A stretch of DNA of 64,000 nucleotides from Bugula neritina (GCA_964035545.1 OZ037770.1:6520729-6584728), one strand, 5' to 3'; counted from the first letter of the stretch, positions 1,845-63,740 are shown. Translations and numbers: made by a program. The notes: generated from the sequence alone by a model not told the origin.

Positions 1845-1983
1845 TTAAAAATGAGCTTGTGATGTTGGAGGTAAGGGACGACCAGCAAAATTATGTTGGT
1901 AAGAATATGCTGTCGAAAATCTGGACTCAGTTTGTGGCAGTTTGATAACTTTAGCAGCAAATTTCTTTTGTCCTTGCTTTTTT
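1845..1983 (-). CDS. Gene A exon 15, cytoplasmic tail ([17 protein letters not shown]...[12 protein letters not shown])
   Basis: ctatag acceptor, phase-2 entry, basic juxtamembrane stretch, homology to B and C tails. Confidence 0.78.
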
Positions 1984-4900
1984 CTATAGTTAACACAAAT
2001 GTGTAATGTGAAAAAAATTTACAATTTATTTTGTCAATTTCATTACAATATACTACTGTATTATAATTATTTCATTTGATTATAGCTTTTGCGACACAAA
2101 CTATTATGTTTGATCTGATTCATAATTCAGTTTATTCATAAAAATACTTTAATACTCCATTTTCATTAGTAGTTTTGTATGCACTTTGTTATGCAATTTA
2201 TATGAAAATAATCTATTTTTAAGTGTTCCATCACTGTGCTTTAAATTTTAAAATACAAGCAATAGATAGCTTATATAAAAAGAGGTTTTTTAAATCAGAT
2301 TGCTTATTATCTAACGACTGTGCCTATAAATGATTCGATCTAAGAGTCAAATAGAAATAGCAGCAATTACCAAGTATTTACATAAAAGAACAAACACTGT
2401 TTGACAGATGAAATTTAGTGATTTAAATTACTACATTTCCATTATTTAATTATGCAAATGGACTTTTTCATTTACCCATGAAAATATAGTTGCATCAAAG
2501 CAAAGCTGCAGCCTCATATGCCATCAAACAGCTCATTTGATAAAGTTGTTTTTGCATTATGCAAATGTTAAAAATGGCTCCTTGAATTACATACACTATA
2601 TGAAATGAAAATTTTTGTGACAGAGGCAAAAATCAGCGATTGTGGCGGCTAGTTACAGTAAATTACAGTAAAGAATATTTATAACTTACAATCTATGCTA
2701 AATTGTAGTTTGGCTCATAACAATTTAAATTATTTTATTTATCTAAGCTCATATTATTTAAAATAATTCCCAATCAGTTTAAATTTATAAAACATTTCTG
2801 TATGCCAAATTAAAGCATTCCCAAGCGATTTTTATTTTTAAAATTCAAAATACTTATAGGCTTTAATTTACCATTTGAAAAATACTTTATGCTCTTTATT
2901 GATTTGTGCTTTTTTAATTTAAAATAAATCGTATTTCTAATTTTGATATATAATGAAGTTAATTTAGAAGAAAATTGGAGTTGAAGCAGCAATTATACTG
3001 TCATTTTGAATGAACACTGACTCAAACTTGGCCATGTTATTTTCAATTTTTTTTAACTGACAATTGCAAAGAGAGTAAAACTCCGTAAAAATAAAACTTG
3101 TAAAGGCATCCATAGAGAAGCAGTAATTATCAAGTTTGAACGGTGTGTTCAAAAACTATTATTAATTTGACCATATTCAAAAAATAGAAAAACACTTTAG
3201 AAAAATATCATTCTAAGATAAATAAAGAACTAACCCAACTAGCCAGGCGGCGGTGGAGACCAGCACAATCAGCAGAGTAACAATTATGATAACTGTAGAG
3301 ATTGCCCAATACAACAGCGGCTCTAGAAAATCAGTCAATAAGAAGACTTTAGCTTCAACATAAACAATTGTAACAATGATTTACTTTAAACCCAAACATT
3401 ACTAATTCTTAAGTGTGTGCCCCTTGTTTAACTTAATTTTTGAATCTCAAAAAACCCACTGCTTTGAGAACTTCAATTTTGAAAGTTCATTAGCATTTAC
3501 TTTCGGGCTAGCAACTTTTAACACATAATCTTCATAGATTCTCTACCATTAGCCTTACTATAACATTGAGCTTTTAGAACATTTTTATACGTAAATGCAA
3601 TAATGTAAAAACAATAACTACATAACTACATAAATATATGGAATTATGAGAATTGCATGTATAATTCTGACCACTTTCAACTTCAGCTATGACTTCAGAA
3701 ACAGCTTCCTGTTTGAAAATCGCTGAGTGACTAAGTCTATCAGCGATTCCAGCTCTCAAAGTTGCACTAAAAGCTGCAGGTAATTCAGTTGTATTTGAAA
3801 GTGAGTATTTAAAAGTAGACCCTTGATTTGAATTTGGCACTCTGATGTCAGCCAGACATTTGTTTGACTTTGAACAGATTGTGAGAATAAAATATCTTTG
3901 AACCTGCAAATATAACTTGGTAAAAGAACATTTTTGTCTACCATATGATTTGTACAGCCCAGTCAACATGTTTATTATGTTATTGCTTATGTAATTTAAT
4001 GATTAAATTATTTGCTTGCTCCTTGACTATAATTGAAATGTTTCCACAATGTATTCATTTTAATTTTTAGTTGTTATTTATAAATAGTGAAAAAAACCAA
4101 CAGAAAATTGCCCAAAAACGACCATTGTTTTGGTTTTAAACAGCATTCTCATGTGTATAATGACCTCAGATGTGTGATAAATCTTTAATCACAATAAATA
4201 TTTTAATTTGAAAGAAATATTATTATTAAACATAATATAATATGACATTATTTAGTAAACCACTTACGCTGTTAGGTTTGACACTCCAATAAAAGCTAGT
4301 TGTTGACGGATCTATTATGTACTTTGCTTTGATGGGTTGTGCTGGTGCTAAAAACAGCATAATATTTTTAAAAACTATTTTTATAGGCCGGTGCACTCAA
4401 ACACACACACGCACACAGAGGCATATGCGCATGATGAATACAGTCATCATTGCAATTATGAGCCAAGCAAAGTTAATGTTTTTGTGTTAGTAATTCAAAT
4501 TTTGCCTCGTATTTGTGAGGTGATGTAAGCTAAGATAATGGCATTTTTATGCAGGAACCTTGAAAAAAACATGCAATTTCAGTTGTTTAGTGTGTGTAGT
4601 TTTAAGTCAATATAATCACTTGAAAAAGAAAAATGGTATATCCAAGTAAAATAACTACTAATTTTGTTTAAAAGTGCAATATAATTTGATTTTTTAAGCA
4701 AAACTTTCAACTATATGTTGCTTGCCTTTAAAAATTTCCTTGAAATCATTGTAGGTGCATATATAATATATTATTTCAATGGTCATGACCATTTTTTTTT
4801 AGTTTAGACAAAACAGCAACTAGTTTACTTTTTAGCCCAACACCAATACAAAAAACGCAGTGAAAATGCTTATAAGTGTTTGTAAAACTCTTAGACAACG

Positions 4901-7900
4901 TGACAAATTAAGTAAGTCAATAAACAGTTGTTTTTCAGATACAGGAAATACAATTGTGCGCAGCAAAAGCTACTATTCTGGGAAAGACCAAATACAGGTA
5001 AATACTTAACTAAAACGTCAATAGTTGCCTCTCTATTACTAAGCACTTTTACAAACCAGGTTAGATAAAAACAGTATTACAAGTTTAGATCTTACCAGAA
5101 TGGAAAACCGAAGTAAAATTATTCAATGACAAAACTTTCATTCCTTTAAATAAAACTGACGTCCATGATTCGAAGGAGTAAATTTTTCCGTAAGTAAACA
5201 TTTTAAGTTTCCATACATTATGAGCTGCCTAAAACATTACAAAAAATTAATTCACTGCATGTTTCATAAAAAAATGAATTTGAAGAATAAATTAAATCTT
5301 TAGGTTGAACTGTCTTGGAACATTTTTTTTGCTTGATCCCTTTACAGTAATAAAATCCTAACTCAATACTGACTCTTCAAAATGCAAAAAATTCAAGAGT
5401 TTATGACCTCCAGGCGTATTAAAATGAAATGCCAATACATAGATGCTTTATGCTGTTGCTTTTCTCATTTTGATGAGCAATATTTTAAAGAAGCTATCAG
5501 AATATTTTATTTTAAATATAGCCAGATCAGAAGGTATAAAACAAAATTATTTAAGTCTATTTTGAAAATTGCTTTTTTCCCTGTTTACAGATCAATTATG
5601 TCAGTTACCTTGTAGAGAATTTCCTAAGTTATAAATAATTATATGGCCTAAAGTTTTTTATTCCTTGGCAATTACCAATCAAATTTTCAAAAAAAAACAC
5701 TGAAAAAAGTTGTCAAACTTTCAGTTTTCTCTTGAAGATCTAAGCAAATTGTCTAAAACATTGCATGATTGTCAAGTAAATAGTGACAGTTGAAGTGAGT
5801 AGAATTTGTTTATTTTTTTGTTTGTGTATTTCTGTGTTTATGTGTCTGTATATATGTTAGCGTATTTCTGTGTTTGTGTGTTTGTGCTTCTGTGCTTGTG
5901 TGTAAGTGTTGATGTGTTTTAATGTGTTTGCGCCTGTTTGATTATGCGTTGGTTTATGTATTTCTTTGTGTCTTTGTCTGTGTGGTGGTCTATGTATTTC
6001 TCTAGGTGCTTTCTTTGTGTTTTTTAGACTGTTTGTGTATTTGTAGCTGATAAACATAACTGACAACATTTAGTTGCACCTTTTCTAATAGGATTGGCTC
6101 AGAAGTATCTGTATAGCCATGGAGATGAAGTTCATCAAAATTATTTTTTTCTGGTGATGGCAGAATAGCCTCTACTTGCAGTTTTTCTTCTTTTATAGTA
6201 ATCTTGATATCTGTTGGTGGAAGAGGATCTGACAAAATAAAAATATTTTTACGTTTGCCATTTCTTTATTTTAAATTCTATCATTGAACAAGAGGTTTAA
6301 GAAAAACTCATGCAAGTTTTTAGTCACTATCCCTGTGAGAAACCCCTAGTGGAAAGGGTTTTTGTTAAAGCAGGCTAAGGACTTGTTTAGGTGAGGCACA
6401 GGAGCGATTAGGCTGAATGCTTTTCTTAGCACCACCAATGGCCTTTGTATGGGCTCGAACTCATGACCTCGTGTTAACTAAGCAAAGGCTCTAGCTCCTA
6501 GACCACGGCTGCCCCTTAAAGAACACACTGTTCAAGTTTCATTGAATTTTAAAGCAAAATTTACTAATATAAATAAATTGTAATTTGCAAATAAGTTCTT
6601 TTTTCCAGACATCAAAAGCTTTCAAAAAAACTATTTATGGCGTACAGAACTGAGTTCAATAAGAGGTAACTTTTGTTATGAATAAAAGTCTTTAGAAGAT
6701 AAATATGTGAAAAGATTTACTCACTCAGTATCAGATCATACACAGGGCTTGTACTCCTACTCTTAGTTTGTTCTATTGTCAATGTGTATGAAAGTTGGTA
6801 AGCTTTGCCAAACTTCACATTTGATATTTCGGTCTAAAATATGCACACAGAATAATAAATAGTTGAAGTCAGCTTACCGTTTTACAGTCTATAAACATAT
6901 GTAACCATATGTAACAAAACCCCCTCACAATTATTTTAATTTCAGCATATTTATGAACTGAGTATTATACGAAAAAACAATTTAGATAAAATGTAAATCA
7001 TTTATGCTTTTTATTGAGCTTGTTATCTACATTATCGAGTTTACAATTTCAATAGGTTTACTCCAGTAAAGCAATGCTATTAGAGCTTTGCTATTTTTTT
7101 GTGTTGCTGAGCTAATCGTGTATCTTTTTGTGTCAAAGCTCACATGTTTATTTTGATAACAGCAACTGTGTCCAGTAGAAACAAGCTTTAATAGATAGTA
7201 CAAAATACTCACCTCTGTTGGGCTGGTATGAGAAGAAACCTCGAAAGCTTTGGGGACAATATTAAGTTTGAGAGTAAGGTGTTTATTAGGGGCGAATTCT
7301 TCTCTTTTAACTTTTATTATTGGTTCATTAGCGCTAGTTCTTTCCATGCTGGCATTTATGATCAAAGGAGCTTCACCATCTACACCAAAAGTCTCAAAAT
7401 ACAATACATCAATTTGTGTATATGTCAGGCTAGCTGATATTTTATGTGGTCATGTAAAACATACCAGATTGTATGTAACAGTTTTGTTGTAGCATTTATG
7501 TAAACTTCATCCATTAGCTTTTGTTATATACAACTGCATTGAGGTCAAGAGTAGTGATGGTATATTAGGCATTTGTTTATATTGTTTACCTTTCATGGTC
7601 AAGAACGTATAGGTAGTGAACCTAATTGCTCATAACGTATATATAGGCTGCTGTCTAAAGTTATTAACTATATGTTATGAGCTTTTAAATATAACTTGGT
7701 TTGGCATTCTGGTTTAGATTATTGAAGCATTATATAGGTAAAAAGTATAGGGAGCAGCCGTGGTCTAGGGGTTAGAGCGTTGCTTTGTGAACATGAAGTT
7801 GTGGGTTCAAACCCGACAAAGGCCATTGGTGATGTTAGAAAGAGCATCCAGTCATAATTGCTCCTGTGCCTCATTTGAACAAGTCCTTAGCCCGTTCTAA

Positions 7901-63522: not shown

Positions 63523-63532
63523 TATATATAAT

Positions 63533-63740
63533 TTACTGGTAGGTATAAACATCAGAATAGTATTTATCACTTGAACTTGGTGATGCTTTTTCTTTATCAT
63601 TACTATAATACTGGGAATGACCAGCAGAAGGTAAAGGATGGGCAAGAACTTTGTTATTCTGAAAACTTGCTTGTTTGCTAGCTTCATCCCGCTGTAACTT
63701 TGCCAATTTCTTAGCAACTCTTTTCCTTTGCTTTTTTTTT
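63533..63740 (-). CDS. Gene C (third paralog, partial): cytoplasmic-tail exon with intact Tyr-rich end
   Basis: attttag acceptor, phase 2: KKKQRKRVAKKLAKLQRDEASKQASFQNNKVLAHPLPSAGHSQYYSNDKEKASPSSSDKYYSDVYTYQ*; rest of gene lies beyond 64000. Confidence 0.8.

Follow-up and report, generated by a model that had tools for sequence, protein, structure and literature searches.

What is a tandem array of single-pass receptors, each joining fibronectin type III (FN3)-like units to an F-type lectin fold, doing in a bryozoan genome, and does it serve the discrimination of self from non-self? The question arises from a 64,000-nucleotide stretch of chromosome 6 (C6) of Bugula neritina (GCA_964035545.1 OZ037770.1:6520729-6584728, hereafter the window; assembly tzBugNeri2.1, PMC11480708), for which a preliminary description had proposed a lineage-specific cluster of recognition receptors comparable with allorecognition and paired-receptor families. 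Our analysis points, with moderate confidence, to a nine-copy birth-and-death family of non-catalytic type I receptors engaged in non-self recognition, an offshoot of a wider F-type/FN3 expansion in Bugula. The lineage-restricted, diversifying cluster of single-pass receptors is upheld, and the allorecognition and paired-receptor part of the proposal is not.

A nine-copy tandem family on chromosome 6

When the window was compared with itself, the segments 61.4-43.5 kb and 40.5-1.8 kb proved similar and collinear on the minus strand, and exon-by-exon reconstruction there yielded two complete genes, A (40510-1845, 756 amino acids) and B (61371-43546, 764 amino acids). Each comprises 15 exons, with GT-AG boundaries at all 14 introns, an identical series of intron phases, and no stop inside any exon or split codon; searches and folds were run per exon, and the reading frame across junctions was verified by phase arithmetic. 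Exon lengths are equal in 12 of 15 cases (exons 2, 7, and 15 differ), and amino-acid identity between A and B ranges from 34 to 94% per exon. A third paralog, C, contributes just its last exon (63740-63533) to the window. The previously described exon plan of A and B and the presence of at least three same-strand paralogs were thus reproduced, and a plus-strand reading was rejected because every exon lies on the minus strand, as do all features of the cluster genes given below.

Searching the genome for copy number, as had been proposed for this cluster, returned exactly nine tandem copies genome-wide, all on the minus strand and confined to ~0.27 Mb (C6:6.37-6.64 Mb), a count reached independently with each of exons 4, 5, 6, and 13. 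Copies D, E, F, and G were read in the 190 kb downstream of the window; the three upstream copies, C included, were placed by coordinates, the tail exon of C being the sole upstream sequence read. Spacing is tight, with just 1.3-3.0 kb from the tail stop to the next gene at C-B, B-A, D-E, and E-F. Copy D carries a frameshift in exon 10, and the exon 8 donor of copy F is GC. A dead, stop-ridden tail exon lies stray between A and D.

Pairwise ratios of nonsynonymous to synonymous divergence (dN/dS) among paralogs of 0.35-0.58 show purifying selection and indicate real coding genes; for A versus B, dS is 0.78 and dN/dS is 0.38. Variation is unevenly distributed. Exon 2 is the least conserved, with the highest dN/dS (0.72) and the lowest identity (49%), and the lectin loops show dN/dS of 0.40-0.61 versus 0.07-0.24 in the framework. 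The pattern is patchy, the nearest neighbour of each copy shifting between exons. Separately, A and B agree at 89-92% over exon 9 with its flanks (window 6684-6860 and 51289-51465), compared with 57-79% in other exons, which suggests either recent gene conversion or strong constraint.

Predicted architecture of the receptors

Exon 1 (61319-61371 in B; 40458-40510 in A) encodes a signal-peptide-like segment with a short, weak hydrophobic core (best 9-residue Kyte-Doolittle (KD) hydropathy ~2.0). The sole transmembrane helix is encoded by exon 14 (44260-44347 in B, KD19 2.65; 3235-3322 in A, KD19 2.88), and none of the six helices examined contains a charged residue. In between, the exons flanking a central lectin-fold segment pair as 2+3, 8+9, 10+11, and 12+13, with a phase-0 intron splitting each pair. 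The ectodomain would comprise five FN3-like units. Unit 1, N-terminal and the most divergent part, would correspond to exons 2 and 3 (61044-60834 and 55841-55727 in B; 40155-39954 and 29860-29746 in A), and units 3-5 to exons 8-13 (52018-51852, 51438-51330, 50902-50754, 47387-47255, 46082-46003, and 45381-45150 in B; 7379-7213, 6833-6725, 6228-6080, 5228-5096, 4347-4268, and 3903-3672 in A). Unit 2 would be interrupted: the model of exon 4 (55207-55383 in B; 29433-29257 in A) shows four strands whose alignment with FN3 domains begins at the domain start, at low Z and with rows almost all FN3, and we infer from the strand pattern and from the paired invariant cysteines, one each in exons 4 and 7, that exon 7 (53118-53282 in B; 8661-8500 in A) supplies the missing C-terminal strands. 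The lectin fold plausibly represents a phase-1 cassette inserted within this unit.

The half-domain models matched mainly FN3 domains at Z 3.3-5.2, that of exon 13 weakly, and a tyrosine-corner-like motif of exons 3, 9, and 11 occurs in 17 of 18 copies compared with ~3% in shuffled sequences, the motif having been picked after the data were seen. No exon searched matched Pfam fn3, and exon 10 resembled Fn3_Dep-1_4th faintly (E 0.18). Profile searches of the PDB with exons 4, 7, and 13 were blank or at chance level, profile-profile comparisons between exons stayed below 5% probability and were uninformative, and no immunoglobulin (Ig) domain was matched, the units being split by phase-0 introns.

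Exons 5-6 (53975-54719 in B; 22268-22980 in A) encode, judged by sequence, an F-type lectin / F5-8C fold domain. Compared with PDB sequences, they matched lectinolysin (E 4e-5) and the pneumococcal fucolectin-related protein SP2159; they matched F-type clusters of the Atlas (0.97) and, faintly, factor V C domains, and PF22633 was reached at E 7e-4, under the cut-off. The F-type fucose motif is His...RXD...R/K and the calcium motif h2DGx (PMC5712786). Every copy examined lacks the His/Arg/Arg fucose triad, with E, Q, K, or R at the His position and H, Y, or E at the first Arg position, and in every copy AVNN or AVNG stands at the place aligned with the calcium motif, which was not found. The cluster proteins would therefore not count as canonical F-type lectins by the features examined. 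The domain lies in mid-ectodomain, with ~3.5 FN3-like units between it and the membrane helix, so that the layout given in the preliminary description (signal peptide, FN3-like array, F-type lectin, transmembrane helix, tail) is amended in two details: the lectin fold is moved away from the membrane, and the signal peptide is downgraded to weak.

Seven of the nine tails were read (A-G). By last-exon length they fall into a long, Tyr-rich class (C, 68 codons), a medium class (A, B, F, and G, 45-50 codons), and a short class (D and E, 19 codons), which, judged by sequence, are frameshift products of one ancestral exon. Exon 15 of gene B (43546-43696) encodes a basic stop-transfer run and a 49-codon tail; that of gene A (1845-1983) encodes a 45-codon tail followed, out of frame, by a C-like Tyr-rich end. 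The cytoplasmic tail of C (63533-63740) contains six tyrosines, in YxxV and YxxQ contexts, and its stop is followed by a fused, degenerate, B-like second tail or 3' untranslated segment (63262-63532), an internal duplication. Immunoreceptor tyrosine-based inhibitory or activation motifs (ITIM/ITAM) were found in none of the seven tails.

Relatives in the genome and in other samples

The genome contains at least 131 F-type-like exon matches in several arrays, some interleaved with protein tyrosine phosphatase (PTP) exons (C3:7.6-8.15 Mb; C5:0.46-0.53 and 1.24-1.51 Mb; C9:5.64-5.66 Mb), and at least 153 PTP exon matches. For exon 5, the nearest relatives outside the cluster lie among PTP exons in the C3:7.6-8.15 Mb array. 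The cluster belongs to a set of several F-type/FN3 receptor arrays that this genome contains. We also observed a tandem array of FN3-rich receptor phosphatases at C6:8.02-8.43 Mb, 1.4 Mb away from the cluster. A search of 1.84 billion representatives gave no close matches other than exon fragments from metagenome contigs, which we take to be B. neritina because they are near-identical to its draft genome at a flanking gene. The searches made found no full-length or RNA-derived homolog, a metagenome scan gave no match, and a literature search for FN3/lectin gene-family expansion in bryozoans found nothing.

This flanking gene (C6:6.343-6.360 Mb, plus strand) encodes a single-pass protein with an NHL-like propeller and Sushi and TIG domains, has paralogs at C6:5.74 and 14.78 Mb, and provided a baseline of divergence together with a second locus, both of them members of a single chromosome 6 receptor family. 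The metagenome contigs are 99.5-99.8% identical to the type S draft genome (PMC7576161) at the flanking gene and ~90% identical to the source assembly, with 82-83% at the second locus; shared repeats of the source assembly reach no more than 92-95% identity to type S DNA. On these sequence comparisons, the source colony appears broadly diverged from type S and perhaps represents another cryptic type. The type-S-like samples are few and may overlap; where they hold matching copies of the cluster genes, these are 99.3-100% identical, apart from one pair at 95% with microsatellite gaps. Between these samples and the source assembly, cluster copies do not correspond one-to-one and are 75-83% identical compared with ~90% at the flanking gene, which fits fast turnover of the cluster.

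Allelic polymorphism, which the preliminary description had put forward as a check, gave no sign of hypervariability in the source colony across gene A exons 8-15 or in the few type-S-like samples. The run from the source colony (depth 107-130, near the published 132-fold HiFi coverage) yielded identical full-depth contigs over exons 8-15, and no half-depth second allele was present among the pieces listed, which do not cover the distal exons. Two other runs of the source study contained only pieces 85-90% alike, with no near-identical A or B, and the source colony may differ in cryptic type from those runs. Hypervariable haplotypes had been considered as the cause of this absence, which extends to other samples, an idea that was dropped, the background divergence of ~10-18% from type S accounting for it.

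Weighing the possible functions

Under the reading that we favour, non-self recognition, the variable distal unit and the lectin loops would be the sites at which different non-self ligands, such as microbial, fouling, or parasite surfaces, are bound, and these ligands might be proteins or altered glycans instead of canonical fucose. Adaptors could be recruited by the long tails with their tyrosines, and short-tailed copies could act as adhesion or decoy partners, possibly together with related receptor protein tyrosine phosphatases (RPTPs). By analogy, such action might resemble that of the Biomphalaria LG5R cluster, in which single-pass receptors bearing a fucolectin domain, some also a PTP domain and some not, lie under a resistance peak (PMC13712769). 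In favour of this reading count the nine copies, the dN/dS values among paralogs with their maxima in exon 2 and the lectin loops, the F-type fold, the frameshift in D and the dead tail exon, the position of the nearest outside F-type exons among PTP exons, and the divergence of the cluster from type-S-like samples beyond that of its flank. Several observations weigh against it: no region has dN/dS >1, no RNA run was found, the FN3 assignment leans on weak structural scores and one short motif, and the case for common descent with RPTPs comes from a single half-domain (E 4e-8), no outside relative having been found with the other exons.

The preliminary description itself raised the alternative that the proteins are ectodomains of receptor phosphatases, with catalytic exons elsewhere or spliced on. 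The closest F-type exons do lie in PTP-containing clusters, and exon 10 recalls, faintly, an FN3 domain of DEP-1. However, the tail exon ends in a stop in all seven copies read, the next gene follows within 1.3-3 kb in the four cases given above, and among the PF00102 (PTP) matches listed, a lower bound, none falls within 6.3-6.7 Mb and the closest is at 8.02 Mb. The genes read contain no PTP domain, these observations speak against hidden catalytic exons, and this alternative is extremely improbable. It is also highly unlikely that the copies are mostly silent, decaying duplicates: the lack of an RNA run, the frameshift in D, the truncated tails, and the GC donor in F would be expected of decay, but A and B, at a dS of 0.78 and a dN/dS of 0.38, have kept open frames throughout and all splice sites intact. 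An unlikely possibility is that of structural or developmental adhesion proteins, multiplied by unequal crossing-over in a repeat-rich region under relaxed selection. In Drosophila, the adhesion protein furrowed and CG9095 carry F-type domains, that of CG9095 being non-canonical (PMC5712786), and the triad loss seen here resembles the state of CG9095; dN/dS is below 1 everywhere, the introns are full of retroelements, and most tails lack signalling motifs. Against adhesion speak the concentration of variation distally and in the lectin loops, the rapid turnover between cryptic types, and the lack of a conserved single-copy orthologue among the 1.84 billion representatives.

The comparison with allorecognition and paired receptors was not supported, given the tails devoid of ITIM/ITAM, the uncharged membrane helices, the lost fucose triad, and the lack of observed hypervariability. 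Moreover, colony fusion does not occur in B. neritina (PMC10078279), which makes fusion-type allorecognition unlikely. A locus for self or kin recognition in the sense of Hydractinia Alr, with allele-specific homophilic or heterophilic binding, would sooner act in rejection of self or sibling sperm or in larval settlement with kin. Rejection of self and sibling sperm has been hypothesised and kin settlement reported in this species (PMC10078279); tandem divergent single-pass genes, pseudogenes, and varied tails also characterise Alr (PMC9546547); F-type domains have diversified in oyster bindin (PMC5712786); and near-identical copies of A or B are missing from the two other runs. Yet that absence is explained by background divergence, exons 8-15 of gene A yielded just one sequence at full depth in the source colony, other samples have nearly invariant matching copies, and Ig domains and ITAM/ITIM are lacking, so that we judge such a locus quite unlikely. 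Very unlikely, in our view, is the bolder proposition that these genes are the first bryozoan determinants of kin or gamete recognition, in which F-type folds nested in FN3 units would bind in a copy- and allele-specific manner and turnover would help to isolate cryptic types.

Repeats and intergenic features

The introns of gene A harbour two decayed long terminal repeat (LTR)-type retroelements (window 16370-21138 and 31440-37620) with gag, reverse transcriptase, RNase H, and integrase-tail matches, the former bearing terminal direct repeats that are split by a long TA run. Decayed LINE-like elements lie in introns of gene B (57300-59700, RVT_1 match) and gene A (13700-16350, identified by eye). 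A 750-bp non-coding repeat, with three copies 83-85% alike at window 12972-13701, 30697-31439, and 33934-34682, recurs across the cluster. The interval from copy F to copy G contains, at C6:6.3906-6.3980 Mb, several unexplained open frames as long as 338 codons that might belong to a DNA transposon, and a fragment at C6:6348237-6348590, beside an LTR element, resembles mitochondrial ATP6 by eye, as a nuclear mitochondrial insertion would. A search of Rfam gave no match.

Comparison with known receptor systems

Immune and recognition genes of bryozoans are essentially uncharted, and this family offers a compact candidate whose architecture is unusual in that its F-type domain, itself degenerate, seems to sit inside an FN3 unit. 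Like Hydractinia Alr (PMC9546547), it consists of tandem, divergent, single-pass paralogs with pseudogenes, diverse tails, and an FN3-like fold, putative in Bugula; unlike Alr, it lacks V/I-set Ig domains and ITAM/ITIM, spreads each domain over two exons rather than one, and comprises 9 genes in ~0.27 Mb without a link to polymorphism or phenotype. With F-type lectins such as AAA, MsaFBP32, lectinolysin, and SP2159 (PMC5712786), it shares sequence similarity in the N-terminal half and an F5/8C-like C-terminal half of the domain, which, however, has the His and both Arg/basic positions replaced and AVNN instead of h2DGx, and is membrane-anchored and probably inserted within an FN3 unit. FN3-array RPTPs (R3 type, DEP-1/CD148) and the F-type/PTP clusters of Bugula have in common with it one transmembrane helix and an FN3-like stalk, putative in this family, and its nearest F-type exons lie in PTP-containing clusters; its own members lack a PTP domain and end in last-exon tails of 19-68 codons.

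A further parallel is with receptor clusters of snails that have been linked to resistance against parasites. In Biomphalaria, LG5R, SudRes1, and PTC1-GRC (PMC13712769) are likewise lophotrochozoan tandem arrays of single-pass genes with a signal peptide and a fucolectin-like domain; their tails are mostly small, some relatives carry PTP domains, copies turn over, and PTC1 includes FN3 proteins; LG5R stalks, however, are EGF/Tie2-like and not FN3. What sets the snail clusters apart is a mapped link with parasite resistance and haplotypes that diverge within species, and the parallel is one of analogy only. By the features examined, the cluster is neither Alr, nor canonical F-type lectin, nor RPTP, and its importance lies more in being part of a genome-wide F-type/FN3 receptor expansion than in being a stand-alone allorecognition locus.

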